This document shows positions 24,661 through 62,055 of a DNA stretch of 64,000 nucleotides, piece after piece. Origin of the DNA: Takakia lepidozioides (Eukaryota; Plantae; Bryophyta); assembly GCA_030704615.1 (NCBI GenBank), contig CM060734.1, positions 7,874,001 to 7,938,000 of the forward strand. Reading direction: 5' to 3'. Position 1 is the stretch's first letter, and the number at the start of each line of letters is the position of its first letter. The notes beneath the pieces were generated by a model. That model worked only from the letters and a program-made list of their open reading frames with translations, was not told the DNA's origin and made no database searches. A program made the translations under genes and the position numbers.

Positions 24661-25159
24661 TTAGTCATGACTAAGATATTTAGCAGAGACTGACGGAAAT
24701 CCACAGACAAAGTACACGTGATCAAGCGTACTTCGAAAGTCTCCTTTCTGTCCAGTCTGTAACTGAGCACGAATTCTTGATGAATCTTCCAGTGTGGTGA
24801 ATTTGTGTTCGATGAAGGAGGAGAAGGAGATGGAACATACTGGACACAAGACAACGGTTTCACCCTCCTCACAAGGTGAATGCGGAGCTACGGTTATTTT
24901 GACGGGGCCTTCCGAAGGACTTTAAGATTATGATCGATCCTCCCCAGTTACTACCTATCCATCCACACAGGAGCCTGACAGCTACTCTCCTGAATCAGAC
25001 GATCATGACGCTTATTCACCAATATGATGTTTTAGGCACCTTCCTCCCGGGTCAGCTGCTTTAAGTTCTTTTCTAGCACAATACTGTGGAGGGTCTTTCG
25101 GAGATCCTGTAGCTGAAGTATCAGCAGAATCAAATGATTTCTGCGCTGGGTACCCAGAG

Positions 25160-25294
25160 TATACACCCGCATCCCCAGAGTATACTCCCGCATCACCAGA
25201 ATATTCTTTGGCATCCCCAGAATACACTCCCTCATCCCCAGAGTATACACCCGCATCTCCAGGGTATACTCCCGGATCCCCATAGTACTCTCCA
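25160..25294 (+). repeat. 21-bp tandem repeat encoding RNA Pol II CTD-like heptads
   Basis: Plus frame reads YTPASPE YTPASPE YSLASPE YTPSSPE YTPASPG YTPGSP* YSP. More YSP/YTP units lie in the same frame between ~24980 and 25580. Confidence 0.9.
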
Positions 25295-25705
25295 ATTGGA
25301 TACTTTAGCCACCTCAAACCCGGGTCGGCTGCACTGGCTTCATTTTTGGAACTATACACACCTACGTCATTTGTAAATTCCATCCATTCGGAATTAGCAG
25401 AAATGAAAGGATTATGCACGGGCTCACCTGAGTATACTCCCACAAGTTCAGAATCTCCCCGTGGTTCTACTGAAGACCCACCTTAATCACCCGGATACCT
25501 TTCAGGGTACCCTAAAAGTTTTCCAGATATTCACGGAGAGTGTACTGGATCTCCATGATATAGTCCTTCATCTCAAAGTTAGGCAAAAATACATAACAGT
25601 ACATTTTAACTCCAACGATGTCTCCATTTTTGGTTGTCACTGTTTCATAATAAAATATTATTGATTATCACTTAAACCAATTGGCTTCATCTGCATCTTT
25701 TGAGA

Positions 25706-25831
25706 TTTCCAGCTTAATTGTAACTTAGATTTATTCCATGCCATTTATTCCATGTTGCAGTCACATTTGAATGTTCCATATTTCAGCTTAATTGTAACTT
25801 AGATTTATTCCATTCCATTTATTCCATGTTG
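25706..25831. repeat. ~73-bp-period direct duplication
   Basis: 'cagcttaattgtaacttagatttattccat.ccatttattccatgttg' twice. Confidence 0.85.
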
Positions 25832-25945
25832 TCATGTTATCCGATACATTATGTTTTGTTTCAAATTTCCGTCATTCCTCTCAATCCTGAAATAATGTCA
25901 TGAGATATCTAATCCCACGAAAATAATGTTGTGTTTCATGTTCAG

Positions 25946-28900
25946 TGGCCAGTCAAAGATACCTCGGGATTGCCTGGTTGGCGTCTGCAAGGAGATATCT
26001 GGGGAGTTCACCTCACCAAAATCCAAACTTCAGTATAGACCATGTAGCTTTGTATACTCTTAACCAGGCGATCTCCGAGTGGGGAATAAATCTTGTGGGT
26101 GTACCCCCTGACCAGCAACTGAGGTTTTCCTTCAAGATTGGAGCAGAGGTGAAAGAGCTTAATTATTATGCCTACGTTAAAGATGTTGAGATGGAGTCCG
26201 ACGTGGAGAATCCAATGATGATGGTTTTCATCAGGGAGGATGGTAGAACGCCAAAGACGTTTGGCTTTTATTTGGAATCTCGTCGCGTTCGCAAAGCAAT
26301 GATGAAAGAAGCTGTTAAGATGGGATTCACTTTCCCTAAAGGTAGTTCAGCCCCTACTGCGGAGGGATTCATCCGAGCTTGGAGCATTTTCCAAAAGAAA
26401 AACTGCAGTCGACAGCAGGTTCCTCTCAGATTGAGAATGAGGAGGAGCAGCCGGCTGGGAAAAAAAAAAAAAAAAAAAAAAACTCGATATTTTTTTTTAT
26501 GAACAACAACAATAAGCCAAAAGCTGGCGAGATTTTCAACAAGGTCAAGTGCGAGGTGATGAAGCAAAGTCTGGAGAATGACTACAAAGACATGTTTTCT
26601 TTTGGGTACAACCACATAATCTCAATTGACGTCTCAAGGATGGAACTTGCTCTAAGAAGCATGGTGTATCGTCCGCTGAATATTAATCACAATGATGAAG
26701 TAAAAGCCCGTCTCTACCAACTGCGAGTTCTAGGTACGAAACATCTCGTCTACCTGGTGCCGAGGAACGAACAGGTGCCAACCCAAATGTATGCGATGAA
26801 ACCAAAGCATCAAAAGGATGTTAACAATTCAAAATTCTTCATCATTGGAGGCCAGCACACAATTATGGCAGCAAAAGTATATTACAACAACTTTTTGAGA
26901 TGGTTAATTAGGAACATCGCGGATCGCGCGTGCTTGTATGCTTGTATGCTTCTATGAGAATCTTATATGGGATATGTCTTAAGTTGTACTTTGTGGACCC
27001 GTTGTGGGACTCACAATGAATACATGATGTTTATTAGCAAGCACGCGCGAACGCGCGTGCTTCATTTTTTGCTTCATTCCACTCTAGTTCAATTCCATGC
27101 TGATGCAACACTTTCCACATCAGGAATTCGTGGAGGAGATACTGACCAAGAGCAGAGGGACCACTACGCCGAATGGCCATCAATTATCCTCTGGTCAGAT
27201 AACAATAATCGACTGCTGAAGATTTCTAAGCTCCTCAACGACCCAAATAAAGCCCAAAAATTCGACACAACATTCCCGGAGAAAGTTGCTCATGCCTTGA
27301 TGTACTATGAGAAGCCGACTTGTTGAACTTGTACATTTTCTTCACTGCGAGCCATTGTGCTTTTGTATACGGCTCTGGGTGCTGCTTGCTTCTGGCGTCA
27401 AATCCCAATACCACCATGACATCATCGATGATAAACCGCCTGTCATTTATTCGATCGATGTAATCTGACGTGCACATAATATTGGGGTCTTTTCCCTTGT
27501 AAGGACCACAAACGCAGATCTTCAAGTCCAAAATCTTCTGGACAACCTTCTTCATTTGGAGGGGGTTCAATCTTTGGAGTTTGCAGACGACATATTTTGT
27601 CAACTGCGATTGTATACCCTTATGTTTCTTTCCGTTAATGTCTAGGAGGTTTCCCTTCTCCCACTCTCTGAAACCTCCTGCCACTTCTCCCAAACATCGT
27701 CATCGCAAAGGACCAAAGTCACGGCCTCCTTAATGCTGAGCATCTCCAATATAAGTTGTGAGGCTTGCAAAAATTCCTGATCAACAGGAACAGCATGTCA
27801 GGCCAACATACACCGGGTACACGTATTTTTGGTGAATATACAACGGGACATTAAAAGAAAAATGAAGTCTAAATGATTACCTTCCACTGAACGGTTTCAG
27901 ATTTCGAAACGTTATCGAATACGAAAACCGTGAAAGTGAATGACGCATTCATCAAATACGTGCTTTCTTGCAAGAAAAAGGTTGAGGACATGGAGAAGGA
28001 AATGGGAAACCTAAATGAGACCTTCAAGTCACTTTATCAGAGTATAGGAGGGAAGCAGAGGTTCACGGATGTAAAAACTTAGTTGAAAATTGTGAGAAAG
28101 AGGGATTTTGAAGACATCGCAATGATGTTCGTCAACACAGTCTGTGACAATGACTCAGTTGTTTTCATGCATAGGAATTACAAGAATATTTTTGATGCGT
28201 TCTTCGAACAGCAGCTGAGCCCTAATGCATTTCTCTTCTTCTCGACGCAGAGGTCCTCTTCCAATCTAGTTTCCTACTTAAGGTTTGGCGAGGGTCGGAA
28301 CAACTATATTCTACTTCAAGGGTTGCATTCCTGGAGAGTTTGACAATCCTTACCAGAGTCGGCCAAAGTCATTTTCAAGACCAGTCATGTGCCTTGATTA
28401 CGTATTTCCTGCAACAGCTGCCCAGATTGAGAACCATGAGGAGCACCTGCAGGCTGTCTTGATGGTCAGCCCCATTAAACCAGTGATTAAGGCTCCAGAT
28501 ACTGAGTTCACGGACCACTAGAATGAATGTGTCGCCTACGAACACGAATTGCGGGCAGAGTCGAGCGACTACATTGCGTCCTTGTTCTGTGGCGAAGGAA
28601 TGGTGGTTGTCAATCTCTTTGGAGGAGTAATGCTAACATCGGCACTCCACGTAAGCATTTCTAGTTCCATTTCCATTTCCATTTCCGTAACACAACTTTG
28701 CGCGATCACTCGTTCATCCTTTTTATTCACTTGTTGTCATGTTTTGCAGGCTAAGAACGTCCGAGTCCTTGATATAAACCACAAGCAAAAAAAGAAATTA
28801 TGCGCGAATAAGGTGGCCGCAAACTTCACACTCCTCCACACGGAGAATGACGATGGAACCGAGGTTGGTGATGACACAAGGGGGGGCAGGAGACCCACAG

Positions 28901-29464
28901 GCACAATGGCGAAGGCAATGACGATGACGAAGAAAGAGATCCAGAGAAAGAGGAAAACCAGGAAGAAGGTGACGGAAATAAAATGTTGGACAGAAATGAA
29001 GAACTTGAGGATGGGAGGAAGAGAAAGGCGATGATGATAATGACCAGCACGACACCGTCAACAATTTCTTGCAAGAGACCGAACAAATTGAGCAAGGGAG
29101 AGATCCACCAGCTGAACAAGCATGGAGGGTATACCGCGAAGAAGCCCACCATCCACAGGCCGTGCAAATTACAGGTGAAGGAGACAAGCCTGGGACAACT
29201 GTACTGTCTTCCTCCACTGAAGAAGTGGGGGGCGATAATGTCCCGGATGACGCTGATTCAAGAGACGTCTTCACTAAGGAGATTGCAGAAATAGACTCAA
29301 GGGTGGGATTCAGGCCGGTGGAGGGCGATATGCCATTATGGATGTCACCATATCAAGGTTTAAGCCAACGGGTTAGAGACATCGTTGATGGTCAGGCATC
29401 TAGGGCACTGGTCGGCGATAAAGTTACTGTTGACGTGAGTATTGCAGATTATGAGTTGTCCTGA
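25946..29464 (+). pseudogene. Multi-exon ParB-like domain + degenerate DNA amino-methyltransferase-like domain + acidic tail; frameshifted and internally inverted
   Basis: 'MVYRPLN..YLVP..FFIIGGQHTIMAAK' is like the ParB/Srx GxHR motif. 'YEHELRAE..IASLFCGEGMVVVNLFGG' resembles MTase motif X-I. GT-AG introns at ~26877-27123 and ~28651-28749. Confidence 0.55.
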
Positions 29465-29497
29465 CACTTGTAAAACAAAATTTTGAAGTTGATGTTA

Positions 29498-29681
29498 AAA
29501 AAAAACAAAAAAGGTGGACGCGTTGCCGAAGCAAGCGTAACTTATGGTGTCACTTGACCCCATAGGGCTACTGCCTTCCGGTGGGAAGGTGGACACCGTA
29601 ATGACTTCCAGCATGTGGATTGAACCCACAACCACTCGTGAGAGGATATGTGCCCTTACCACTGGGCTACATGCTGGTTGT
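29498..29681 (-). mobile_element. tRNA-derived SINE, copy 2 (diverged subfamily)
   Basis: Same A/B boxes and body as the other copies. T-rich tail. Imperfect TSD (ttgaagttgatgtta / ttgagttgatgtaa). Confidence 0.88.
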
Positions 29682-30229
29682 ATTGAGTTGATGTAACATC
29701 AGAATTCGTATATAAATGGAACTAATAACTTTGTGTTTTGTGATAGTCTCATGAATCAATCAAAACTTTTATGTAAGTCTAATCACCAGCATTTTCTGTA
29801 GATCCGTGAGTCAAATACAGAGGAAGTGACACATAGAAGAACAAACGACACACAACAGCGTACAATGAAAAAACAATCTGACTTGAGTGTGAGGATATCG
29901 TTGCCCACATTGGAAGCTTCAGAAACCGCGGGTGATCGCGCGAGGTTACTTTTGGGAGGGGTCAAGAAAAACATGCCGGAGGACGAAAGACCCGTCTCTG
30001 GTGGAGATGGCGGCCAAACCTCATCCGACTTGCAGCAAGTGCCGCCAAAGCTGGTATTTCATTTTCCGCCTTCTCCTTTCTTTCCTGCTTTCCATTACGA
30101 AAAAATTCCAATGAATTAATAATTATTTCCTAATGGGCCCGATGATATGACCTATCCACCACACGACTATTCCCAAGCTGTCAATCCTGGGGATTTTTTC
30201 CAATGGGTCCAAATGGAAGTCAGCCCGGA

Positions 30230-31062
30230 TATTCTGTCGTTGTTCTGGATGTCGGGTTCCTTTGTGAGGTCTACCTCCAGAAGGGGCAAAAAAAACCCCT
30301 CCCGCAACGCAGCCTTGTATCTCTACTGGAAGATTTAAGTTAGCAATGCGACATGAGGTGGGAGACTTCCTCAAATGGGTCGTGAAGAAGTTCTTCGTCG
30401 TCTTATGGAACACTAGCAAAGAAGAGACTGTCGTGGATTTCAAATCAACTTTGTTCAGGAGGAACGCCTACATGGTCATGCATTACAGTTCCGACCAATG
30501 TGTGGAACATAGACTTACGTTCAACCAGTATTGGTCTACGTTTCCTAAGGCCCCTATTTACTTCAAACGACTTTACGACTTGTTCGTTGACCCGGACTCT
30601 AAAGCCTACAGGTCTAACACCCTGCTTATAGACGTCGTAGGGAATATGGTCTTTCCTCAATCCTCTGAGCCTGGTCATCTTCCTCCATAAATAGAAGCAC
30701 TTATAAATCCATACAAGGATGATTTTTTGATGGGTCATCTGAAGCCCCACCTGGACAAGTTGAGGCATAAAAAAAAATGGACGCTTGGGCCTTCAATGAG
30801 CATAACCTTTTTGGTATACCTAAGAAAAAAGTATGACGCCTCCCGAAGGGAGCGTAACTTATGGTGTCACTTCACCACAGGGGCTACTTCCTTCCAGCTG
30901 AAAGGTGGACACCTTCATGACACACCAGACCGTAGTTTGAACCCACAACCACATCCAACGTGGTATGTGCCCATTACCACTGGGCTACATGCTGGTTGTC
31001 GGTATACCTAAGAATATCTACTTTGAGGATGCAAGAATGAAATTCATTCAACGCTGAGACTT
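30230..31062 (+). pseudogene. FCP1/SCP (NIF, HAD) phosphatase-like domain, copy 1; frameshifted and SINE-interrupted
   Basis: 'VVVLDVGFLC' (alternative frame at ~30236), then 'RHEVGDFLKWVVKKFFVVLWNT', 'IYFKRL', 'SNTLLID'. Confidence 0.7.
30827..31000 (-). mobile_element. tRNA-derived SINE, copy 3
   Basis: Perfect 14-bp TSD ggtatacctaagaa at 30813-30826 and 31001-31014. T tail. Highly similar to copy 1. Confidence 0.92.
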
Positions 31063-31299
31063 TCCATGGCCTAAGTACAAGGAGGAATGAGATGCACATC
31101 TTAAAGGCCCGTGCCTTGGAATGTGGAATACTAAAGTGACTATATTTTGAGAATGAACTGGGAGTGGGAGGTCATTGAGTTCCTTATGTGTACATGGGAT
31201 TTTTCTCTTCTCTTCTCTATTCTGCTTTGATTTACCTAAGTGTCTTTATCACTCCTTCACAGATCCGACAGCCTGGATCTCCACCTGCGAGGGGACCCC

Positions 31300-31975
31300 G
31301 CTTGATAATTTTTTGACGTGAATGGAGTGTTGTGCAAATAATGAAGCGCCTGAGCACAGGCCCTGCTCCACGTTTTTCGGAATCTGATTACAAAATTCCT
31401 GCTATTGTTGGGTATCAGCAAATCTTTAGATGGGAGATGTACTGGGAAGTTTGGCAAGAGTTACACAAGCATTTCATTTTAGGAATCTGGAGCTGCATGA
31501 TGCTTAAAAACTTAAATGCCGTTCTGGATTTGCTCCTACGTGGTCTTCCACGGCCAGCGTTCATCATGTCGCAGGAAGATTGTATCATTTGCCCAAGCAA
31601 TCTGCACCCAAATTACCGACCAGGACAAGAACAACCTCATGTGTTCCTGAAACCACTCATTAAAGTATGGCAGAGTTCTGAAGGTTATTACAATCAGAGT
31701 AACACTCTGTTGATTGATGATACGGCTTTGAAGTGCTTGCTGAACCCTCGTGAATCATGTCTTCTTCTCAAGTCTTTTGAGAACATCGACGTCGACGATT
31801 TCTTCTTCACAAACTTAGAGATTTTTTGCTTGGCTTCTTGAATGTTGAGAACGTTTCGAGCTTTTTGAAAGCAAGGAGAATAGGCTTTCCACCTTTCAAA
31901 GTTAACGATCCACAGTTCAGGCCTCTTCTTGACTATATTGACAATTCACAATATCGTCATTTCCGAGTAAATGAT
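31300..31975 (+). pseudogene. FCP1/SCP-like domain, copy 2; frameshifted
   Basis: 'FFDVNGVLC' at ~31309, then 'HFILGIWSC..FIMSQEDC..VFLKPLIKVW..SNTLLIDDTALKCLLNP'. Confidence 0.8.
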
Positions 31976-33550
31976 AAGTAAATATTCGTGACCTACTATG
32001 GACACAGTTTACTACTTAATATTGAATGTCAAGACCTTGGAATTCAGTCTTCTTATGACATTCTTCTGCATTGCATGGAAATTGTTATCTTGCCAATCCA
32101 TAAGCAACGGTCAGAGGTTTCAATGATTCTTTATGTCCGTCGATTTCTTTTGGGAACCTCGCGTGGTCACGCGTTCTTCCAACTCAAATTTATGACTTTG
32201 TTGATATATATTTTACTTGCAGGTATGCTCATATCAAAATGTTCTCCACGCCACAAATGCAGCTCCAATTGGCGAAACATGTTCGTCTGATATTGTTGAT
32301 GATTTAGACATGATCAGACCAGAAGCTTTTAAAGGACCTGACAACTTGTTATCTACTCAGGCATCAATTGCTATTATCGAGAGGGATCCTTTCAGTGTTT
32401 CAGATGTTGTTTCGAGGCTCAATATGTCAAAAGGTGAACCCACCGTTAGCAGGGTTGATGATTTAACTGGGGTTGGCTACATAGGGGAAATGGACTCTCA
32501 AGTTCTTGAGGAATCCTCTTTGGAGCCGTCTTCATCCCATCACTTTTCAGCAAACGCCATCATGGGGCCTCTACATGACTCTACCGAACTACATGTTCCA
32601 TTGGATGCTACCGTCGCTGAACTGCCGCCTCATCATATCATAATTCCAAGTGAGTCACCGGATCACGAGGGTTGGACACCTCAGCTGCTGAGAAGTTAGG
32701 TGATTTAATTCTATTTCATCCATGCGTTTTATTGTTATCGTGTTTCTGTTCATCCTCTGATTTTCTTTCTTTACTCCAAGCCAGAAAAGCTGCAACGTAT
32801 GACCTTCCTGTGAAGCGGCAACTTCTGTGGGGTTGTATTCCAAGGTAATCCATTTTTTCCGTTTGAATTCGGTTCAGGATGTGCAGAAGGCAAGGAACCG
32901 CATTCCATTATCAACCGTGAGAGGGAACGTTATTGAACTCACTCATTCACCGAGGTCAGCACACCGACAAAACCAACAAATATTTGTGCACATCCCCAAC
33001 CGCCCAGAATTCCGGATGGTCTTGTGTCAAGGAAACGTCATAGATCACAGCAGTCTGTGGCGGTGGTGTCCGATGATAAAAGAACAACATCCGGCGTGCT
33101 GTTATCCCTTCAACATTCACCTGCCTCCAGTGGTAACCCGCCTCAGAATCGTAGGGTAAATCTTGTAAAGGTAATAAGTATCTCCTTCACTTGATCATAT
33201 GTCTTATTGTTTCTGGCTTCCTGGTAATGAATACATATATCATTTACATGGTGGACATAACTTGACACACAAGAACCTCGCGCGATCGCGCGTGGTTGCA
33301 GGAAACTCAGATACTCCGGATGGTGTTTGTTTGTCTCATGTCACTTTGGGTGTCGTAATGCGGAGTCATGGACATCCTTTGCAAAATATTACATTTTCCT
33401 TTCAGGATATAGACGCGGGATATACCACAAAACGCAAGTATGTCGTAGCATTTTTGAGTTGGAAAATATACTAGAAATAATTTAATTTTGGGTCAGATAA
33501 CATAAACTAATGGGTTCTTTTGGATGGTTCAGAATATTGTTTCTTAACCA

Positions 33551-34306
33551 ATGTGTGCTGTCCGAAAACACAAACGCATATTGTTGGTCTTGAGTGTCAA
33601 TGAACTTCTTTGCTACAGGGCACCTCCTACCGGAGGTGAGTTGTTTAAACAGAGGTTCCACTTGAGGAAAGTAACAATTCGGGTGCCCGCAAGACCGTTT
33701 GTGGTTCCAAGACCTGGAGTGCTAGAGTTTCTTCGACTTGCATTGACTCATTTTCATGTAGCAATTTGGTCTTGCTTTGAGAGTGATACTCTATTCAAGA
33801 TGTTGGAGTGTTTCGTTCCCCCGGAAATTACGAAAAAAATTCGCTTCATTTGGTCTACCGAGCATTGCACAGATACAGCTGGACATATTAAGCCTGAGAT
33901 GAAATATCTTATTAAAGATATTAAGAGTATTCTCGTAAAATTTAGTAGGAAAGAATTTGCTAGGCAGGGGCGAATTCTACTGGTCGATGATGATCCATCC
34001 AAGGCACTCCAAAACCCAGTGAATACTGGAGTCTTCCCAATCACATTCAATGAATCAAACCATGAGGAGGATTTGGTTGACCTCACCAAAGCTTTGTGGC
34101 CTTTTCTCTCGGGCATGATTGGAGCCCCGTCCGTTGTTGATTATGTCAGCAAGAACTCCTACATATCTTCCGGTTTACCGATAGATCGAAATCACGTCTA
34201 CTGGTCTTGGTTTGGAAGATTTGTTGATGCTTCTGTTTGGCACCCACCGCAAAAAGAACCCGATTATCTCGGTATGTTGATTAACATTGCCCTATATCGT
34301 GCGTAG
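33551..34306 (+). CDS. FCP1/SCP-like domain protein, copy 3; intact 251-aa ORF lacking the catalytic Asp
   Basis: 'ILLVLSVNELL..FVVPRPGVLEFL..HFHVAIWSC..FIWSTEHC..LIKDI..ILLVDDDPSKALQNP'. Confidence 0.8.
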   Translation: MCAVRKHKRILLVLSVNELLCYRAPPTGGELFKQRFHLRKVTIRVPARPFVVPRPGVLEFLRLALTHFHVAIWSCFESDTLFKMLECFVPPEITKKIRFIWSTEHCTDTAGHIKPEMKYLIKDIKSILVKFSRKEFARQGRILLVDDDPSKALQNPVNTGVFPITFNESNHEEDLVDLTKALWPFLSGMIGAPSVVDYVSKNSYISSGLPIDRNHVYWSWFGRFVDASVWHPPQKEPDYLGMLINIALYRA

Positions 34307-34649
34307 TCTTTCGTTGTTACATGAACCTCCATTTGTTCTTTGACGAATGTTGACTTCACATACTTTTGTGAAATCAATGATATTTCTCTGACATTTGGAT
34401 ATTCGTTAACAATTCCCTGTTGTGCTACTTCCTCAGAGTTATTTTCAAGTGTCAAGTTCAGAATCAAATTTGACATAAGAAAAAAGAAGAAAGGCAGCGG
34501 AAGGCTGCGCGGAGGGACCACGAGGCTTTACGGTCAGTGACAGGTGATACCACGGACATGTTGGGTCATATCTTCAATCAATCTCCGACTGTATCGGATG
34601 GACTTTGGATTCAAGCGAGAGCGCTCAGTGAGGGCGGAGCTCCGCCCTC

Positions 34650-35900
34650 CCACCGTTTTCGTCGCTAAACTCTGTAACCGTGACTTATTATTTAGGGTTC
34701 CGCTATACTTTTAGCTTTTACATTCTATCCCTCCTCCTTTTATGTCAGCTCGGCTACTCTCACCCTAACTATCTTTCTAGCACCACACTCCACCGCCGCC
34801 ACCGCTCGGCTTCTCCGCTCTGTGCTTGTGACGATGGTTCTATACGCAGATGGAAGCTCTACCACCCCCCACCTTTATATCAAGCAAGGAGCTACGATGC
34901 GACAGATATACTCGCGCAGGCATACCATTCACATCACTATGTGCTCACTACTTTGAGCTCGACACCCTTCTTCCACGAGTCAGCGAAGCTTCCTACGCAG
35001 CACTATGTGGCTTCTCGCACCGGACAGTATGTATACACACTCGCCAACACTGCGATGGCGTTTCTGTCTACCTGTCACGTCTCAAGCACGAGGTACTTTC
35101 TTCTCAAGCCGGTCTTTACAACCTCCGGCGGTCCAGCTTCACACAAAACACAGTCCCAAGCTACAAGCATGCAGACATCACATCAACGTTACAACCTACG
35201 TTCGCTTGTCTTGGAGGAAGAGCAGGGATTTTGAAGCGGCTACTGCCCATTTTCTGGTTCGTGGTTTCACCGTGTAGAGGCTGGGGGCTTCACTCCCACC
35301 TCTGGAGACCGTCTGAACTTCAATCGACGAATTTGGTATCAGAGGCCATCGGCGATTGGAGTAGGAGGCGGAATCCCCCAACCTCTCCCGCCCCTTATTT
35401 TCAACTAGACCCTTGCTCCGACACTCCCAACTCGTATCAGCAGCAGGCCATCATTGTTTGTCTACCCTGGGCCAAGTCCGAATGTACCAGGTGCTAGACT
35501 TCCAAACCCCCTCTCTACCTGATCAAATTTACACAAGGCTGCCATCCTACGAGTGTCGTGGATCATCATGGACCCAAAAGAGTCCTTTGCTATGGTGGCA
35601 ACACGATGACACAGGTGCTATCAGACCAAGCAGCCGACACTATTACCCACATGCGCTACAATTTGGGTTCCTATACGACAGAGTTATGTATGAGCTCCAC
35701 TCGCTTGGCCCTCTCCGAGCCATGCTTCCAAGCTCACAAGACGCAGATGCAAGCTACTACTCTAATGCGGGTCAACCAAACCTGGTCTTCATATCCCACC
35801 ACCAGGGCCTTGCATCTGTACTTCTCCAGCTTAACACCATCTATAATGAAGTATGAAGCTCTAACCTCGACGGCAAGCATTGGGCTCTCTACGACTTACA
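34650..35900 (+). mobile_element. Probable 5' part (ORF1-like) of a non-LTR element, homologous to 24000-24450 (minus)
   Basis: Shared 'WK[LV]YHPPPLYQ' peptide and DNA similarity. Preceded by a perfect 20-bp palindrome. Confidence 0.4.
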
Positions 35901-36329
35901 AACAGCAGCAGCTGGATCCACGCCTGCTCCTATGATTGGGGAGGAAGGGAAGGCTCCCCACGTCTTGCTGAAGAAGCCGTCGAGGCGATTTTGGATTTTT
36001 CAACGATCTGCAGCACCTCAACTTGTATATATCAAGGCGCGGGTAAAGGCTCTCAGAGGTGATGCACACATGGTTGACATATCCCCGACCCAACATCAGG
36101 TGACCCCCTTGCCAAGGACCTCACCGCTTGTCATGATCTCTACCTTGTTCACTCGCCCCAACTCTACTCAGTTCCGCCATCTGCCTATTGATTTTACCTT
36201 CGAACGCCAGCGTGGGACACATGGTTCCGAAACGCCTACACTTTCAGATGATGGAGGGGAGGATCTCTTTTCCAGGCATATTGAGATGGAGAAAATTAAC
36301 TCTCCCAGTGTTGCCTCAACTTCTACATC

Positions 36330-39460: not shown

Positions 39461-39678
39461 AAATGCTACCTTGGGAAAATGTTACCTTGGGAACCACTCT
39501 CTTCCAAAAGATATTCGGAACTACTGGCTACCGTGGGAAAATGCTACCTTGGGAAAGTGTTACCTTGGGAAAATGCTACCTTGCGGAAATGCTACCTTGG
39601 GAATGTGCCACCTTGGGAAAATGCTACCTTGCGGAAGTGCTACCTTGGGAAAATGTTACCTTGGGGAAATTGTTACCT
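39461..39678. repeat. 16-bp minisatellite (aatgctaccttgggaa), ~11 units
   Basis: Directly visible tandem array with one interruption. Confidence 0.92.
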
Positions 39679-39866: not shown

Positions 39867-39899
39867 CACATGTAAACTTCCATATTTCCCTCCCCTAGT

Positions 39900-49762: not shown

Positions 49763-49856
49763 TGTAGAGGGAGAGCTTTACGAGAATGGGTCTGGTATGC
49801 ACTCCCTTACGGGGTGAGTGCATACCACACTCACTCCGTAAGGGACTGCCATGCCA
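49763..49856. repeat. 28-bp motif repeated at 53642-53669, followed by nested inverted repeats (probable terminus of another DNA element)
   Basis: tgtagagggagagctttacgagaatggg occurs twice. tggtatgcactc/gagtgcatacca and cccttacgg/ccgtaaggg are inverted pairs. Confidence 0.65.
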
Positions 49857-52829
49857 GGGGTTTGGATGGTGGGTTCCCTCCCTCTCCCTCCCTCCCTCCC
49901 TCCAGATATCTATTTGGGATTTAAAATATGATTTTCTAGTTTGGAATCTATTGTTATATAACCCCCAAAATTAAAAAAAAAATCAGGGGCTCATCCGTAC
50001 TGGATGAACACCTATTGGAAAATGTGGCTTGATGTTTTTTGCCTAAAATGGATGATTACTGGACAGCCTGGTATTTTTTGAAGTATTGCTTAAAAACTAA
50101 TGAATGGCTGGTTTTTTCATCCATGTTGGATGTCATCCATAATGGATGAGTTCTTGAAAACCTACGAAAAACATCCATGCTGGATGAAATCCTGCGAAAG
50201 TAACCTACCAGCTATGACCGATTTTCCATCCAAACTGGATGAAATCGCGGGGAAGCAGGATTGGTTCACCTCTCTAAACCTAAACAGCCCGACGGTTGGG
50301 CTTCTGTGTTTCCTGGAGCTGTGCGATGGTGGATTCACGGCGCGATGGCGGCCAGACAGGAAGAAATCACGGGGAGGTTATGCATGATCACTTCTCTAAC
50401 TCTAAACAGCCCGACACTTTGGCGTTTTAATTTCTTGGATATGTGTGATGGCGGCCTGAGAACGCAGAGGCATGATCCCCGCGTTGGTAATCCCCTTAGG
50501 AGGTGTGACTATGGTTGATCTTAACGCTCCCCTGCTGGTATTTTCACGCCACTAGCGGGCAGACAAGCTGCTGCCGCGATCTGTGGAGAATCCTTCTTTC
50601 TTTGTGTTTTCTGCAGCGGCGCCCTAACAGATCTGTGGAGGCTTGTCTGCACTCCCCTTCAAGAAAATCTATTATGTTTTGCTTTGTTGTATGCCAGATC
50701 ATGGACGCCAGGCTGAAGAGCTCTCTAGTTCCATTAATTTTGAAAAAATTTGGTTGATTCTGCTTCTGCTTTTTGCTTGGTCTCTTTGTTTGCTTTATAA
50801 CTCAGTTTTGATATGGATAGCAACTGTGAAGTCATGCCATTCACCTCGCGCATCCTCACTAACACACAAAATATTTTTTGTGTTTGTTTTTGGGACGGGC
50901 GCAGGTGAGGGACTTCACTTGAATTGATTTATGAAGCTTGCAGGGATCTAAGCATTGTAGAGTGGATGAGTGTTGCTGCAATCGGCTGTTGCTGCACACA
51001 GCGGCTTCAAAAAATGCTTCAATGGGGATATACTTCAAACTTTGACCTTGATTTCTAGTTCTTTGAAACTGTTAAGTTTTTGAAGTATGGTCACTTGCAG
51101 GGTTTCCTAGAACACAGACAGTCTAGTGACGGCTCTATGGCTTTTATGCCAAAGACATATAGTTTGATCATGGTGGCTTTTTGACAAGGTTATGGAATGC
51201 GGTTTCCAGACCTCTATTAAATGGCTCTGGCTTTATGGAGGATCAAGCCATCTCCAGGCCTTTATTAAAATGCTTGGCTTTATTTTATTTCTTGGCTTTA
51301 TGGAGAGTCAAACCAGATTACATTCCCCCAAGCCCTTGGGGTTATGACACGGTAAAGGTTAAGTGATTCTGGATATCCTTATTGTGACCTATATGCTCTG
51401 AATGTTTCTTATGGGGTGCTGGATTACCATTTCCAGATTTGTACCTGAAGGTATCTATGCTGGAAACGGCTTTACACATGTGTATCCGTGTAAGTAAAAT
51501 GCAGCAATGCACCTGCAACGTGTGTTTATGGCTCATTTCTTTCTATGAGGGCATAAATCAAGGGTGTTGATTGTCTCCTTCAATGCTGAATGACCTGAAA
51601 GCTCAGTTTGAGACTCAGTTTTCTTAGAGGGCATGAATGATCTAGTGGCTGGCTTACAATGAGACTGCAATAAAGGGTATGCAGATCTGGTCATGCTATG
51701 TCAGATCTGTCATATGTTTTCATGACCCTTTGGCTTTATTTTTTACCTTGGCAATGCTTCGAAAGTTCTTGTGATGCACTGGTTTTGAGTCTGGTTTCTT
51801 AAGCATGCCTTAGTTATGCTATGGCCTTGGTATCGCTATGTTGTGATACATTGTCTAGCTCCAGACTTAAACCTGGTCATGGGGCAGTAAGCAGGGCCAC
51901 TTCATTTGTTTTGGCTTAGATCTCCGAACTTGAAATTGCATAACTATTTAAGCCTCAGCTTTAAAGGGCAGAATCTATGATGATGGATCTTAGAGTGTAG
52001 ATATTCTCATGTAAATGCATGATGTTAATCTGATTCTTGTCCATGCTACTAAGTTCTGGAAAACCGAATCCAGGCTTAAGAAGGTTTATAACATACAAAA
52101 CTGGTATGTTCAAATGACTCTTTGCTCAAAAAGACACTTGATACAAGTTCATATGGGTAAGGCATTGAAAAGATTCTTACTTCAATTGTTTGAGACTCAA
52201 GGGCATGAATCTATGGTGACGGATTTCTTCGACACCTACCTTGTTTGCAAGCTCTTAACACATGTGTATGTCTAGTGGTTCTGTCATGCCTACAAGGTAT
52301 GTAAGCTGATGCTGGAAACTATTTCATAACTGCTCATGGCATAGGACTGTTTTCTTATGAAAAGAAGACTTTGAATTGAAGACTTTCTCGGGCAGCCCTC
52401 TCAGATCCAACTGAGCTGCAAATGGTATAAAGCAAGGGGGTTGATGGTCTCTTTCAATGATGAATGGCCTTTAAAAAAAAAAACCCCCCCACCCTCCCAC
52501 CCTGAGATTTCATGTGCTCTGAAATCTACAGTTCAATCATTTGAGGAGATGTGCATGGAAGGAGGTGTTAGATGGTGCCATGTAAAGGGCTGATGATGTC
52601 TTTTAATTGACAATGACCCTACTAGTCTTGTATGCGTCTTGACATGACATTAATATCTTCCCTCTCTTCTATTGACCGGTGTACTTATGTGGTGTTTGTA
52701 CACACCATCTACCCCTCTCCTTTCTTGTTCCATCTTTCTCATGTCGAGGTACTAACCTTTCTTTGGCTTTGACATAAGGGTAGCAAGTACACTCTGAACT
52801 GGAGTGATAAACTCAAAGCCAAGGGAGTT

Positions 52830-53190
52830 CTAGCAAGGGGGCACTCCAGATTGGAGTAATGGGCTCAAAGCCATGGAATACGAGTAAGGTATGATCCAGG
52901 TGTCCAACAAGAGTTTGTTGGTGATTTGAGCTTGGAGAGAAAGGCATCATAAGCACAGAGTTTCTAAGGTAGACCTGAAAGCTGATATTGTGAGCTAGGC
53001 CCTGGTCAGACAGCATAATCGAGTATATGTGTACACCTTCTACATGATCCGGTCAATGTACATTACCGTTTAGCTTGTCCCCTGTAGCCGATGCCTCATG
53101 CCACTTTTAGATACCTACTGGCTCATATGCTTTTATGCTTATCTTGTATGTGGCCTCGCCCTTTGTAGCACCACTAAAAATTGCCCAAGT
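52830..53190 (-). repeat. Inverted homolog of 44180-44560
   Basis: Matches the reverse complement of 44180-44560 by eye. Confidence 0.8.
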
Positions 53191-56100
53191 GTAATATATG
53201 GCTGGAATAGACCGGTGAATCAGTCATACAATGTGGTGATTTCACTGGCTTCTCCCATTATGTATCTTTCCAACAGCGTTGATACGGCTTGGAAAGAGTG
53301 TCACGTACTGATTCATACCCTTGGAAAATTGATTCTGAAACCAGTAAGTTGACTCACATCATGATAAGGTTCCTCGAACAAGGATCCTTCCCTGGTTAAA
53401 TTTGGAAATGATGTGCAGCAATTTGCTGCCATTGGTTGAAGAACACTTATAATTTCTATGCTCATGCCTGTCCACTTGTGTGAAGGCTATGTCGGCAAGC
53501 TAAAAGGTAACCTAGAAACTGATCAGTACTCTGTTTTGCCTAGCATGATTTATGCTTCACCATTGTTCATTCTTGGTCTGGGAGGAGAGATTGTAGGCCT
53601 TTTATCCTTTTGGTATTTAAAGTCCACGGATAAAACTACAATGTAGAGGGAGAGCTTTACGAGAATGGGAATAGTCCTCCAAAGAATTCCAAATAGTCCT
53701 CCAAATGGTCCTCCAAGGACCCCAAATAGATGCGTTCTTCAGCGCAGTGAATAAATAAGTTGAGGGAGACTAAGAAATGTGTGGACAAAACTGAATAATT
53801 AGGGGCAAAGATAAGTAAGAAATTTTGGCAAAGGGTAGGAAGCAGAAAGAGAGACCTTGAGAGTACTTATTGACTGTGCTGGCCTTGACAATGATCTAAT
53901 TTGAAGCCCCTGCACGTCTGCGTTGGACTCTTGTAGCAGTCCGGGGTTTTCACTCACCGGGGTGCGTGGTGAATGCCACAGAATGGGTGTACACCCACAG
54001 AATGGGTATACACCAAATTCTAAGTGCACATTTCCATCTTCACCATTCACCCCGTTCTCTTGAGCTTTGCATGGACGTCATAAAGTTTCTCTCTATTCAC
54101 TCAAAGTTGGATAGTAGTTTTATGGTTTGGGGTGGAGGTTGGTTGTTGGGGGCTAACTGTTGAATTCATTGTGTCTTGTCTTTCTTTCGTGACCTAAGCT
54201 CTGTGACCTCCCATGGACTCTGTACGTCTTTCTTACTCTGAGCTCCCCATGGATGTTGTAAACCTCTCTCACGCGTCTTTTCTTGCTTGGCAGCTTACCT
54301 GGATGAATCGTTCACTCTTACACAATCCCTTGAGCAGTAGGTGCTTTTGGGCTGCTTGTAGCCCCTTTCTCTTTCTTGTTTCTTACTTCCTCTTGTCCAT
54401 GGACCTTATAAAGTTCCCTATCATTTCATTTGTCCTTCTGTGGACGTTATACAATTCTTTATCTTGCTTTCTCTTGTCCCACAAGCACTTGAAGCTTTCT
54501 GCCGACATTAGAAAATACTAGTCCATAAGTACCAGTCCATTTCATTTCTGCACTAACTTGCCTCTTTCATTGAGTATGCTTGGGTGGGTCTTTGACTTAA
54601 TCCAAGCAGTTGTGATTGTGGAACTGTGACCTGGGTCGGTGACAACGGCACAGGTGAAGCGAGTGTAGAAAGAACAACAGGATTGTGCACACCGAAGGGG
54701 GCAAGTTACTAGAGCAGCATCAATGGATTGCTATAAGAAGCAGTTGTTTCGCAAACCTGGCACTGATTACGACTTCGTCACACGCATCGCTCATGTTGCA
54801 CAACAGGATTTCGAGCATTTGCAACGTGTTGAAGAAGGTGCCTTCATGAGCAGTGCCTGATTTTATCAATCGTGCCGATGCTGCTGCGGGGAACATAAGA
54901 CGTATGTCCTCTCTTCATGGCCACATTGAGGATGTCCACTCCCAATTGCTCATGGCCTCCGTTGACATTATGTAAATTCTTTTCTTGGTTTCCTTCTTTC
55001 TGTGCATCCCCGTGTCTCTGTCCTTCAGCAATGGCCTGTATTATGCTCACCTCTTGTCCATCATATCTAGGTTTCCCTCAAACTGGGCATGGGGTCTTCC
55101 CACACTTGTAAGCAGAAAGTCAAGTGGAACTAAGTGCCCCCTCTTATCGCACCTTTGAGTGAGACTGTTCTTTTATTCAAACCAGCGCCCTCTATCTGAG
55201 TTACTCCTTGATGTGACTCGATAGGATGAAAGGTTCGGCCATGCAGGCTACCTAAGAAGAGCAAGCCTGCCACTTAATAATCTCCTCCATTAAGGGACAT
55301 GACAAAGACATGGCACAATAAGATGCCATAATTCCTTCTTATGTTTGATGAAAACCCTTTCATATCTGAAAGTCTTAGGATGAGTCACGTCGTCTAAGAC
55401 TTCTTTTCCTGGCATTTCTTAAACTCGATTCCAAGAAGGCTTACAGTTGGCCATCTCTTTCTCACTTCTGTAAATGGTTTGAGTTTTGTCGATGGGATAC
55501 AAAGTGGAGCCTCAGAGGAAAGGGCCATATATTGCTTACCAGATCCTCCAATGATGAAAAACGTCTGTCGTCTCCTTCACTTGGCATGCAAGTGCTCAAA
55601 CAGAAATCTAGAAAAGGTCACCTGAAAGTATACAGCAAAACAGAGTCAGGCATGTTTTTCGCCAAAGAGGTGTTGCAGAGTTTTGAAGTCTCACTCTGCA
55701 TCCGAGCAACAAGAAGCCCATGAGAAAGAAGCTTCCAACTGTTGCATATGTACTCTATGACACAAAATTGACCTTTTTTGGACAACATAATTGTCAATAG
55801 AGTTCGAATGTATGCAAGGCAGCAGGATTGAGGCTGTACAAGTACGGGCCTACTAAAATGCTGAGGCACAACAACCACTTACATGCCCATGTGGCTGTAG
55901 AAGGACAGTTTATGAGTCCATGGGAAGCTCAGACACCTTACTGGATAAGGAAATCAGAAAAACTGGCGAGTACAATTGGCTTTGACAGAGAAAAAAACAG
56001 AATAATGATGTACTTGATTTGTTGCAAGGTATATCCTGTGAGGATTGTTTGGTGGTGGGCTTTTGCTTCTTTCCTGCAGCCTGCCTTCTGCTGGCACAGT

Positions 56101-57613
56101 TCGCGTGACAGTGGAGACACCGTCAACAAATTTTGTCCGGAAGATGACATTCGCATTGTTGAACATGCTCTCTCTCGAGGACACCACAATAAACTGTCAT
56201 TCACAACACAATCACCTTTTAGGAAGGGCAGATTACACATTCACCTTCCCCACTAATGGCTACAAAGGGCATGGATCCATTTTTCTATAACAAGGTCATG
56301 GGTTGGTGTATGATACACATACCTGAGATTGGGGAAAGCGAGCTTTGATCATACGACCAATGTTGTGCGTGTGGCTGAGATCAAGATCTGCATCAACCCA
56401 CCAGACAACAAGCCAAATATAACACTGCAACCGTTTTTTTCTTCCTCTTGGTTGAGCTTGCCTGTCATCATTGTTTCTGTCAGCTCTTATCACTCGTGAA
56501 GATGATGGCGTTGTCAGTAAATGCCACTCACTGGGTTGGAGGACTTCTGAAACCTAGACAATTCTTTTTCATTGCCATATATGTAATAGAACAGGAACAA
56601 AAAGCTCTAAAAATCACCTCATCAATAGAGTAAGAAAGCTTTTTTGGTCATAATGGTGATGGAGGCCGTAATGATCCTTAACAGATTCCTCTGCTTGTAT
56701 CATTTGTACATATAGAAATAAATTGTCTACATACACTGCTATGGATCGACTGGACTGCATCGACTGGACTGCTTGTTGTAGGTTTGCATTATAATTGGAG
56801 TTTCCACGATGAGTTGCAAGATCTCGTGACCTGCCCTTGCAGGTTGCATGAACTTTTAAGCTAGTGGGTGTCAAATTGGCATTGCAAGGTGCATCAGTCC
56901 TGCATGCATCCTAATGGAGTCATTGGGTAATTCAAATAGGGGATTGCAAAAATGTATACTGTAGCACTCGCATCTTCGAGACGCATGAAGCTGAGATTGG
57001 CTCTTGCCGTGTTCACTTGTCTTTGGGCAATGGGTGCATTCTCCACTGGGGCACTCCGGCGGATGGAGAGTCACCTTTGCGGAAACGAGCCCACATTGGT
57101 GCTGGGATGGGCTTATCAGTTCTTTACCAAAAATGCAAGCTCCTGCTATGGGGACCTGGTAAGTGCTTCTTCATCTTGTACTGTGGTGGTTGTTTTTGCA
57201 TGGCACTTGTGCTGCAAGGGGCAGAGCCATTCATTTGGCTGGAGGTTCAATTCCTCCGCAAATGAGCTATTCCTTTGTCACGGCAATCCCACATGTGCCC
57301 AACGAAGGAGTTGCTGAATTTGCTGCTTTGAGGGGTCTTGCTTTGTGCGTGTAGAATTCATGGTGGGGGGGGGATCCACATGAACCAACATGACACAGTA
57401 CGGTTGGGCTCACAACTAAGACCAATGCACGGCTCTTGAGAGCTGTTTTGTTGCTATGACAGTGTGGACAACATCCCTGGACATAAATGACTATTCATTG
57501 TTTCCCCCTTTGGCAAAAGCATCCATGTAGTGCATTCGTTGTGCCCAACTGGACATCAGGATTCCTTATGACAGCTCTGGTCTAGGAGCGGGCAGGTTAA
57601 TGGAGACCAAGAT

Positions 57614-60275
57614 TCAGGTGAAATGACTGTCCGAATCTAAACTATCTTCCCCTTCACTGCCCCCATGTGCAATGCGCCTTGCGCTATTTCTCAAAGGAAC
57701 AATGTCTTCCTCGTTAAAGGCAACTGCTCCTTCCAAAGAGACCGGTTCGGCCGTGTTGGGTAGATTTCGTGGTTCCCTCAAACCCTCAAAGTCCGCATTC
57801 TCCCCAAGGTCCACCTCGTTCACGTCGGCCACGACTCGCCTGGCCCGGGGGTCTTTGCAAAGAACCACCTTCCATCCCGGCGCATGAGCATCTGAAAAGA
57901 AAACTTGCTCTACTTGGGATGGGAAACATAATGGCTCTTCCTTTGGTGGTAGCATCCTTCTGAAATCAACTAGAAGGAACCCGTACTCATCCCGCTTCAT
58001 GGTCGCATTCTCTCCCACCATGTTGGCTCTCACCCAAGAACAACGGAAAACAAACAATTGGCTGCACAAGACCATAGTCCAGTTTCAGGATTTCCTTGAT
58101 GACTCCTACATATTGTAGAGGGCATGAAATGGGATTCCGATCTCGTGCACAGCTCCTACTCTGCTGCTCGAAAACAGAAGCCACGCCGCTGTCATAAGTC
58201 ACGAAGAGGCGGGTGTTGGCATCGTCCACTCTATAATGATTGCCATATGCTTTCATTGACTGGTACGAAGTGGCAACCAGCCCCGGGGGGAACGACAAAC
58301 TCACCATGTCCGCATGTTCAGGCTCATTCTCCGATGCGTGTGCTGCAACCGCTGATCTGACCCACACTGCAAACGGCTGCAGCTCCTCCAATGTTGTGGG
58401 GTATTCCACTGGGGATGCCCTCATCCGACCGTTTCTCCGCCATGCTCTTGCAAATGCACCCCGCTCAGCTTTCACGCGGTCCTTCTCCGCTGCGTACTTC
58501 CTTGAACAAACCAAAATCTGTTCGACAGAAGTTTAATATATCAAACTCTTATATGTTGAGACCCTTATAGTGGTATCATGTTTGTTATAGGTACATCAGT
58601 CCACCTTCACACACCGTGCGAAACATGCTTGCCCCATGCTCCCAAGCCCTTTCAAGAAAACAGTAGTGATGCAGCCTGCTACACATTCACTTACAAGTAA
58701 CATTACCAACTAAAAAAGATGTTTTGTAGTCGACTGAAGCACTCTGTTAGTACATCATGCCACTCCCATAGTGGACGAAATGACTGGTGACAGTATAGGT
58801 AATTCCAGCTTAGAAACACCATCAAGAAAAGCAGTGGAGGGATATAAGTTTGCACTCACTGTCTCCATGGTGTCATTGTGGTTCTGTTGTTTAGCACATA
58901 GTCATGTGCCACATCCCGGAGCCGAGGGGTCATGACATGCTTTGTCACACCACCTTCTAAAACCTCGCCTTGCACTCCTTCTTCCTCGTTCTCGTCCCAT
59001 ACCCGTCGTGTTGTTGCATCAAATGAAGACATGTACTCTGTCATGAACCCCAGGGCTTCGTCCCGAATGTAGCCCTCCGCCATACTCCCCTCGGGCCGTG
59101 ACTTGTTGCGTACATACCCCTTAAGGTCCTTCATGTACCTCTCTATGGGATACATCCATCGGTTGGCTAGGGGCCCACACACATGCAGCTCCTCTACGAG
59201 ATGCACTAGCAAGTGCGTCATGACGTCAAAGAATGATGGAGGGAATTCTTTCTCCAACAAACAAAGGGTCATAGCCACATCCTCAGGCAACAATGTAATC
59301 TCCCTTGTTCCCACACCTTCGCACATATCCTCCTAAACACTCGACTTACACGCATTATGGCCGTTCGAGGACCCAACGCCATCATACCTCGGATGCACAC
59401 AAGCAAAATCTGTTGCATCATCACATGCAGATCATGGGACTTCATCCCTAACCATTTCTTGTTCATGGCATGCTTCTAGAAAGCACCCGAGAATCCGGTT
59501 GGCACTTTCAGGGCTCCCAACGTCTTCAAGAACTGCTCTGCTCACATTTGGTGAGGACATATGGTGCTGCTAGCATGAGGCCTTTTCGAGGTCTTTGGGG
59601 ATCAGGCCTTAGCCACAAATGTGGCGTAACCCTTCGATCTCCATGTCGTGCCGTACGTTTACCGTATCCTTCTCCCCAAAGATCATCTTTAGAATGTTCT
59701 CGCACAGGTTCTTCTCACAATGCATGGGATCTAGGAGGTACCGCTGCAACAGGTCCTGCCATGCAATTTGTCCTCCCATGAGATGAACTTCCATGGGCAC
59801 AAAAAGTAGACTATGTGGCAGAAGCCGTTCATGTAACTACAATATACTTTCACCAACTGCAAGATCCACTCCACAGCGAGGTGTATGACTTCAACATCTA
59901 CTGCATAGTAGTTACACTCACTTACGAGTTCTCTTCCAGACTCCTGACAGTAAAGGTAATTCCATGAACCACAATATGAAAGAAAGTGAGTGAAGGGGGA
60001 AGGGGGGGCATGCACCTTCCAGTATGGCAAATCCCAAAGGATTGTTCGGCGCTTCACCCCATGCTCTAAGGCTGGATCCCCTCTACCTCCATCTCTCCCT
60101 CCAACCTCTATGTACGCTTCCCGTTCCATTGCATATTGCAAGGTCTCCACCGCGGTCACAGCCTTCGGTGCCACTCTCTTTTCAACACATCCATTGAAGT
60201 GCTTTTTTGCCTGACGATATGGGTGGTTTCTTGCAAGGTAAGCTCGATGCCCCAGGGGGTACTTTTGTCTCCCAA
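57614..60275 (-). mobile_element. CACTA TnpD transposase pseudogene (DUF4218 and DUF4216 regions; 5' catalytic part missing)
   Basis: 'GHRAYLARNHPYR', 'LPYWK', 'LDPMHCEKN', 'MKSHDLHVMMQQ', 'FPPSFFDVMTHLLVHL..RWMYPIERYMKDLKGYVRNKSRPEGSMAEGY', 'FPSQVEQVFF..WKVV'. Introns and frameshifts present. Confidence 0.93.
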
Positions 60276-60289
60276 CCCGCTGAGGTGAG

Positions 60290-60900
60290 ACCCCGTGACA
60301 CCCCCTCAGAAGCTCCTTTTAGTGTGAAGTCGAAACTCATTATTCTGGACCTGAACGCGATCTTGTGCCACTCTATTCCTAATTTCCAGCCCAACCCGAG
60401 GCGTGATTGGCCATGGGTCTTGACAACCAACAAGTTTGTTTTCCCAAGGCCCCAGGTCTCCGAGTTCTTAAACCTGCTTTTCCGCTATTTCTATGTTGGA
60501 ATATGGTCTTGCGCTTCAAAGGGGAATGTTGCAAACATCTTGAAAGTGGTGATGTAGGGGGTCGTGGGTTCTTCCCTGTTCGTGTGGTCACAAGAGGACT
60601 GTGACCCCTCAACAGAGCCACACCCCACAAAAGGGCCTGCCGTTCAGAACTATCATAAGAGATTGTCACGGGTGTGGTCTGAATATTCTGGCTTTAACAA
60701 AACCAACACCCTGTTAGTGGACGATTCTCCACACAAGGGGAAGGGGAACTCCCCTTTCAACATGGTTCATCCACTATCCTTTGATGTTACTGGCAATGCC
60801 AGTGAGGGGCCTGATTCAGATTACCTTCTAGAAACTGTATGGCCCTATTGCTAGGCTCTTTTTTCATCCGAGGATGTGCGTGTCTTCACAAGACAGCGGA
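60290..60900 (+). pseudogene. FCP1/SCP-like domain, copy 4; in-frame stops at 60555 and 60852
   Basis: 'KLIILDLNAILC..FVFPRPQVSEFL..YFYVGIWSC..LFVWSQEDC..KRLSRVW..TNTLLVDDSPHK'. Confidence 0.85.
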
Positions 60901-61744
60901 AGCTGACTCCGACTGACCGCCTGAGTGCAGGCGAGCATGGGGCCACTGGGGGGGGTGCTTCTGTGCCCTGCCAGGTGAAACCAACCTGCACTGTTTGTAA
61001 CATGACATAGTAACTTGCATGTTTGATTCGTTCCCCCCTTTTGCCCTCTCACGTTTGGATGGTCTGTTTTGTTTTGAAGACACCGAAGGGGGTGGGAGCT
61101 GGCTTGGCGGAGACAGTCGTGGCTGGTGCTTCACAGACCAAAGTGCTCTAGCAGTAGTCGGGATCTGCCCTCCGCCATGACCCGGTTAGGCCGAAGGTAA
61201 TAATTCTTCCCACACTTCGTCTCCGCGATCTCCCTTGGACTACTTCCATTGATGCTGAAGCAGCCTTCGTGTGTTTTGTGCAGGTGAGATACATGCGTGG
61301 AGCCCATGTAGGCCCAGCATCGCAGCCAGAAGTGGTTCCGCAGGCATGCCCACTCACTTCTTTGATGTAGTAGCGTTTTTGTTAGTGTGTTTTTTTGCAT
61401 GAAGTTGTAGTTTGCTCCTTTGTGCACGTTCTGGCTTGCCTGATTTATGAAATTTGTATTCAGTTGCATTGTGGGAGTTCTTGAAAATCTCATCTCTCAC
61501 AACGCGAATGTTTTCGCTGCTGCAGTTGAAGACACGCGGACAACGTTCCTCGGCTGCCACCCTCAATGACGAGCCTCGGTTCAAGGTACGCACGATGACC
61601 TTGTTACTTCGTGGATTTGAAGCCCAATACTTCTTGACTTTGGAGCATTCGTGCCTCTTCATTTGAGGTTGCCCACATGCCCAAATACATCACCCTTCCT
61701 TGCTTTGTGTTGTGCTGAATGGGAGTTGATGTTGGTGTGTGCAG

Positions 61745-61935
61745 ATTTCAGATCCTGTGTTTTTGTTGAACCCCAATGACAAGCATGCAAAGGCAACCGC
61801 CGCAAAGGCGGAAGTGGTGGGATTAGATGGGGTTGACAAGTTCCATTGCAAGGACATTCGTTCCGGGTGGTACAAGGTGAAAGTCCTGGATATTATGCTT
61901 CCAAGTGTTGTCCTGCCCTACCCAAATCTTGACGA

Positions 61936-61975
<40 letters not shown>

Positions 61976-62055
61976 AGACTACACTTGCGCACGTGAAAGA
62001 CACGGTTACTCTCTGGCCAGAGAAGAGTATGAGGCCGGGTGAAGGTGTCAAGTGA
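61745..62055 (+). mobile_element. CACTA TnpA C-terminal (Tnp1/En/Spm-like) exon containing a long poly-C run
   Basis: 'AKAEVVG..FHCKDIRSGWYKVKVLDI..VVLPYP..QTTLAHVKDTVTLWP' fits the Tnp1-like pattern. Confidence 0.6.

Follow-up and report, generated by a model that had tools for sequence, protein, structure and literature searches.

In Ectocarpus, the cargo of the giant transposon Sola1-1_Ec32 includes an accessory gene coding for a ParB-MTase protein; the proposal is that this protein binds the very element that carries it and modifies it (PMC12477816). The Plavaka elements PAG2 and PAG3 of Bostrychia, whose carrier is EnSpm-related, hold a ParB-like accessory protein beside inverted-repeat arrays, together with N6-MTase cargo (10.1101/2025.02.11.637652). 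The ParB-MTase accessory genes of algal transposons are only predictions (2025) and have never been tested. In the VANDAL/VANC system an accessory protein is paired with family-specific, fast-diverging internal target motifs, and anti-silencing is proven (PMC10398659).

The window analysed here is a stretch of 64,000 nucleotides from Takakia lepidozioides (contig CM060734.1, positions 7,874,001 to 7,938,000). Its region of main interest, block A, resembles Sola1-1_Ec32 (PMC12477816) in that a ParB-like domain is joined to an N4/N6 MTase-like domain in the cargo of a DNA transposon. It differs in lying in a land plant, in its degenerate MTase motifs, in the one to three NIF domains that follow these parts and the CTD-like heptads that precede these parts, in its dispersed palindromes, and in the missing transposase of the window copy. 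With Plavaka (10.1101/2025.02.11.637652) block A shares a ParB-like protein, inverted repeats and MTase-type cargo; there, however, ParB forms a fusion with a 2OG oxygenase, as the MTase does with SET, and neither NIF domains nor heptads have been reported. The likeness to VANC (PMC10398659) lies in the combination of an accessory protein with family-specific internal motifs; block A may function similarly, and a relation in sequence is not expected. We found no paper on Sola1 in bryophytes, and none on NIF or CTD-like additions to ParB-MTase cargo; these NIF and heptad additions appear undescribed.

Composition of the interval

Host genes occupy 1-21.7 kb of the window, and from 21.8 kb onward it is a repeat nest which also includes the start of a Gypsy pol. 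The host genes are spliced; this, the style of the PPR repeats and best matches in liverworts and mosses fit a seed-free plant. The features are collected in Table 1. Spliced models were searched one exon at a time, unjoined; word-based homologue searches found no homologues. Three dead DNA-transposon pieces, unrelated to one another and forming a nest, are the best explanation of the interval, and every gene in question except the NIF3 open reading frame is broken.

Table 1. Features of the interval (window positions; NIF rows give PF03031 matches).
Feature	Position	Strand	Remarks
LINE-like 5' part	21.8-24.8 kb		faces left
Possible seventh palindrome copy	24708		
Block A, palindrome-tagged multi-copy accessory cassette remnant without transposase	24780-34565	+	ends approximate
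CTD-like heptad exon	24905-25577	+	core array 25153-25292; heptads also at 25433, 25559; five in-frame stops
N-terminal and ParB-like exons	25946-26877	+	GGQH motif near 26845; reading frame disrupted at A-run 26461-26483
Private 24-bp palindrome, core CACGCGC-GATC-GCGCGTG	26910, 27037, 28692, 29922, 32153, 33272		six dispersed copies; span 26910-33299
Linker exons, inverted in window copy	27311-27917	-	opposite-strand joints; match to Riccia plus-strand linker, E 0.002
Degenerate amino-MTase-like exons and acidic tail	28083-29464	+	intron 28651-28749
SINE-like insertion with target-site duplication	29523-29681	-	second copy 30827-30999; later insertions outside cassette
NIF1	30120-30790	+	30268-30687, E 0.011 (weak); frameshifted; motif I not recognisable
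NIF2	31371-31978	+	31317-31838, E 1.4e-4; frameshifted near 31820; motif I not recognisable
NIF3	33551-34306	+	33548-34303, E 8.4e-12; open 251-aa ORF; motif I S-V-N-E-L
LINE-like element	34570-44115		faces right; PPR repeats, endonuclease, RT
Second MTase-like gene, 5'-truncated	45400-46801	+	exons 46245-46491, 46608-46801
Decayed TnpA-like gene	47780-48774	+	judged by eye, no Pfam match
CACTA right end	49059-49762	-	TIR 49741-49762 and subterminal repeats
CACTA TnpD, 3' half only (5'-truncated)	57617-60318	-	Transposase_21 positions 168-208, DUF4218, DUF4216
NIF4	60333-60851	+	60198-60554 and 60558-60851, E 1.7e-7, 0.053; motif I D-L-N-A-I; in-frame stop 60555
Tnp1/TnpA-like C-terminal exon	61730-61993	+	by eye, no Pfam match

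Block A is flanked by two LINE-like 5' regions, both pointing outward. Summed contig depth over 24.8-29.4 kb is about 18-26x that of window-identical contigs (~60), a rough ratio that is not to be read as copy number, and it rises in a step at ~24800, the left edge of the block. These depths support the earlier suggestion that the modules are cargo of a transposon type, present in many copies, as opposed to single-copy genes of the host. That the block lies wholly on the plus strand held for most of its length; contigs with opposite-strand joints at 27311 and 27917 indicate that 27.31-27.92 kb is inverted in the window copy. The stop at 28080 is likewise private to this copy, other copies having a sense codon. 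In run X6, taken as a guess to be RNA, an 88%-identical contig covers 28328-28650 and 28750-29483 without gaps, with the predicted GT-AG intron exactly removed, so that a sister copy of block A is putatively transcribed and spliced.

No DNA transposase of any family was found in block A, where only NIF domains and the Rpb1 repeat were matched among 131 six-frame pieces. There is no CACTA TIR or CACTA-type end at the block, whose ends may have been lost, and the CACTA subterminal motif is absent from it. Nor was a DUF7869/Sola1 DDE transposase, with TIR and 4-bp TSD, found anywhere in the window. The segment 33178-33471 was considered as Sola1-like and dropped, having no Pfam match and containing a palindrome site. 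By analogy with Ectocarpus, the carrier of block A would most likely have been a giant cut-and-paste element, Sola1.

Several neighbouring sequences were also recorded. The host genes of positions 1-21700, named by eye, are AAA-ATPase-like (minus), LRAT-like (14.4-15.9 kb, minus) and WD40 CIA1-like (16.9-21.6 kb, plus), and a LINE RT/zf-RVT fragment lies among them at 8.6-9.5 kb. The right-hand LINE-like element consists of a 5' region, degenerate PPR repeats at 35.9-38.8 kb, 16-bp and 12-bp arrays, an endonuclease, and an RT cut upstream of its catalytic motif; its 5' end and the 5' end of the inverted LINE-like piece (24.8-21.8 kb) are similar. The short SINE-like repeat has a third copy at 12888-13054. 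Two of the three copies have clear target-site duplications, its depth is ~1000x single-copy, and empty-site joints are present in other copies of block A.

ParB-like and MTase-like genes, palindromes and relatives

The ParB-like/MTase-like gene reported in block A matches no profile in either part, and is upheld by homologues in Riccia and by look-alikes in the atlas. The ParB-like exon aligns with a Riccia exon at E 8e-5. Its atlas look-alikes are DUF6551/ParB_N, at scores of about 0.89-0.94 with low recognition. The single-sequence structure model has a pLDDT of 42 and is unusable, and a fold search with it was uninformative. The exon is thus only tentatively assigned to ParB.

The MTase-like exons of block A find their support solely through the Riccia homologues. 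In the second gene the two exons join in frame to give a D-L-S-M-G-T-G SAM loop, ie motif I, whose place in beta-class MTases is near the C-terminus; this motif is degenerate in block A and in Riccia. Exon 46245-46491 has N6_N4_Mtase in 27 of 30 atlas matches and no Pfam, PHROG or NCBIfam match. The reported CACTA end at 49762, ~3 kb from this gene, is borne out by a TIR and repeats. The two window exons do not align with each other, and tblastn searches of phages and plasmids with the ParB and MTase exons gave no meaningful match. DNA methylation, the marking that had been proposed, is doubtful because the catalytic [DNS]PP[YFW] motif IV is absent from both MTase regions; it is also absent in frame from the Riccia homologues. 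Both window genes are damaged, and the motif may have been lost by decay.

Two divergent phmmer matches to NIF3 in Riccia sorocarpa (P0150 and P0115) lie inside cassettes of the same order as block A. At both loci, L008 and L009, the order is ParB-like, linker, MTase-like, NIF, which is colinear with block A. Pairwise similarity to the window is modest outside the NIF domain (ParB-like E 8e-5, linker 0.002, MTase-like 0.003-0.005, NIF 1e-16), and the Riccia MTase-like exon matches PF01555 at E 6e-4 to 1.6e-3. A search of the fetched flanks of the Riccia loci, out to 10 kb, found no DNA transposase or terminus. The contigs L005 and L010, both from one ENA sample, are 85% alike over 3.4 kb and carry tandem NIF domains 2 kb apart. 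One is an orthologue of NIF3 (36%, E 2e-30), in which the motif-I Asp is also lost. The occurrence of ParB-like, MTase-like and NIF parts together in other genomes bears out the proposal of a recurring module. A metagenome locus, L004, was rejected as a relative since its match was a spurious one of 24 residues. The sequence shared by L005 (3400-3430) and L010 (10800-10830) terminates in a hairpin, which closes on CTAG and is followed by T, and this may be a Helitron-like or palindromic-TIR end.

In leave-one-out scoring, five of the six palindrome sites of block A exceeded every site in the 54 kb outside the block. The palindrome occurs in neither CACTA piece nor elsewhere in the window, and its sites are deep within the cassette, inside accessory-gene introns and in the spacers. 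The Riccia loci carry private palindromes of their own, with 21 matches in L008, and the ENA loci carry a third type. There is no cross-match among the palindromes of the window, Riccia and the ENA loci, ie the families differ while the cassette is conserved. Sequence-specific self-recognition would be expected to show just this pattern, a conserved protein cassette with a palindrome that changes by family. The centre of the palindrome is GATC in the window and L005, and ATGCAT or ACGCGT in Riccia.

NIF domains and CTD-like heptads

All four FCP1/SCP-like (NIF) domains of the sequence-only reading are matched by PF03031, weakly in the case of NIF1; NIF4 was read through with an X at its stop. 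The predicted model of NIF3 has a mean pLDDT of 82 and the FCP/SCP-type HAD fold of the FCPH group, and in a fold search it resembles CTDNEP1, SCP, TIM50 and UBLCP1 about equally. The fold is thus predicted to be common to NIF3, FCP1/SCP, the C1271.03c-like NIF proteins and TIM50. NIF3 retains the Lys and Asp-Asp motifs and has lost the nucleophile Asp of motif I. DxDx(T/V) is the CTD-phosphatase signature (PMC5070719). Unlike FCP1/SCP, none of the four domains contains it, NIF3 lacking even the first Asp, and it was found in 0 of 80 homologues, whose consensus is D-V-N-G.

The phmmer matches of NIF3 are mostly host C1271.03c-like proteins, and the kin of the NIF domains are these plant proteins (27-34% identity) and not FCP1/SCP/CPL. 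We found no paper on C1271.03c. NIF1-4 are 23-35% alike, no more than they are to host proteins, and the same holds for NIF4 against NIF1-3. A quick tree of 56 rows, with hits below rank 45 left out, has long branches, and by it one origin is neither demonstrated nor ruled out. Active dephosphorylation of the CTD, the means by which the modules had been thought to interfere with the CTD code, is unlikely because DxDx(T/V) is absent and descent is from the C1271.03c-like family.

The CTD-like heptads are borne out. The 21-bp tandem array at 25153-25287 (6.4 copies) reads Y-[TS]-P-x-S-P-[EG] with the unit Y-T-P-A-S-P-E, and is matched by PF05001 at E 6e-7. All five matches to Y[ST]PxSP in the six frames of the window are inside it. 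Y1, P3, S5 and P6 are preserved at a strict 7-residue period, as in Pol II CTD-like repeats. A splice from the heptads to the ParB-like exons (25578-25945) is phase-compatible, but the putative RNA contig crosses it unspliced. The Riccia and ENA loci showed no heptads. The array of ZNF768 has been suggested to recruit CTD-binding factors (PMC6344866), and by analogy the window heptads may do so. Both are heptads of a non-polymerase protein with Y1/P3/S5/P6 conserved and an acidic substitution. ZNF768 (PMC6344866) is, however, a host mammalian protein with Glu at position 2 and not 7, and its heptads are tied to a DNA-binding domain recognising a repeat, whereas in block A the link to a DNA-binding gene is putative.

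CACTA pieces and the proposed role of the cassette

The 45-49.8 kb piece carries a CACTA TIR and subterminal repeats (GCGAC-N8-GTCGC, at 49059-49670 only) at one end; the left end is absent, and another repeat has cut off the 5' part of its MTase-like gene. The window holds no partner for the TIR at 49762, which points left. This lone TIR closes an element that extends leftward from it, and the TnpD/NIF4 piece is therefore outside that element. The claim that the fourth NIF lies between TnpD and a Tnp1-like exon was right as to the domain, but TnpD is on the opposite strand: NIF4 and the exon (plus) start ~15 bp from the TnpD break (minus), a head-to-head junction that is the product of deletion or inversion. 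An inverted TnpD inside one CACTA starting at 53635 was rejected, as no plus-strand TnpD N-terminus was found. With a TIR, subterminal repeats and TnpD domains at 49-49.8 and 57.6-60.3 kb, the pieces resemble CACTA/EnSpm TnpD-TnpA elements, and differ in a NIF domain in the TnpA-like gene and in MTase-like cargo; we found no paper on either. An identical 28-bp sequence starting TGTAGAG is present just outside the TIR (49763-49790) and at 53642-53669, after the CACTA-like AACTACAA. The CACTA probably inserted into an element of another DNA-transposon family, whose terminus this sequence would be. Cys/His-rich decayed frames on the plus strand at 54600-57400 are KDZ-transposase-like by eye only, with no Pfam match.

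The proposal that one CACTA lineage carries all the modules, actively marking DNA and editing the Pol II CTD code, could draw on the CACTA end 3 kb from the second MTase-like gene and on NIF4 abutting TnpD. It is now very improbable. The elements are separate because block A has no CACTA end, subterminal repeat or transposase, its palindrome is private and missing from both CACTA pieces, and the MTases and NIF domains are not copies of each other; DxDx(T/V) and PPY are absent besides. No evidence links block A to CACTA, and none demonstrates an effect on RNA polymerase II. Scarcely more credible is that heptads and NIF domains are passengers with no functional link, the former a chance S/P-rich repeat and the latter a C1271.03c-like host exon that was captured and triplicated. 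The ordinary plant host kin of the NIF domains, the lack of heptads in Riccia and ENA loci and the unspliced contig would fit this, but the NIF position kept in liverwort cassettes and the NIF3 orthologue in another organism argue for selection on NIF, and the strict period of the heptads also speaks against chance. We give somewhat more weight, while still thinking it unlikely, to the palindromes being transposase or transpososome sites, the accessory proteins acting in transposition or targeting and not in silencing. TnpA binds CACTA subterminal repeats, and repeats of a comparable kind, GC-rich and palindromic, occur at the CACTA end of the window. The palindromes of block A are, however, internal to the accessory genes, and differ between families with the cassette conserved, as VANC targets do (PMC10398659).

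We lean towards an accessory cassette whose product binds the palindromes of the cassette and either shields or activates the family, the MTase-like and NIF domains serving for binding. Block A would be the accessory half of a giant element that has lost its transposase end. The spliced ParB-like/pseudo-MTase protein of intact copies would bind the dispersed palindromes of the element, in a parS/VANC-like self-recognition, and once bound would protect or activate the transposon family. The MTase-like and NIF parts would serve as binding modules that are non-catalytic or altered, and the heptads, as a low-complexity tail, may recruit factors. Two further elements would use parts of the same kinds: the CACTA end together with the MTase-like gene, and the CACTA TnpD/TnpA-NIF piece. 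We infer the carrier superfamily, the ParB identity, DNA binding, anti-silencing and the heptad role. A bolder version, which we hold to be possible but rather unlikely, is a self-targeted transcription switch in transposons of seed-free plants: the ParB-like clamp on its private palindrome would bring in the CTD-mimic tail and dead NIF domains as phospho-CTD readers or decoys, several superfamilies in one genome having recruited NIF and MTase-like modules convergently.

Being dead and without a transposase, the window copy is a poor type specimen. A land-plant cassette with conserved gene order, private palindromes and liverwort relatives makes self-recognition testable in Marchantia-type laboratory plants. 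If true, it would provide, alongside VANC, a second and unrelated route to sequence-specific anti-silencing.

CpG o/e was highest in block A (0.72 over 24775-34565) among the regions compared, the others being 0.15-0.61. This is partly due to the palindromes, and is weakly consistent with low past methylation. The lowest value, 0.15, was that of a strongly CpG-depleted inverted repeat pair at 44166-44950 and 52485-53205, the two members of which are 66% alike.
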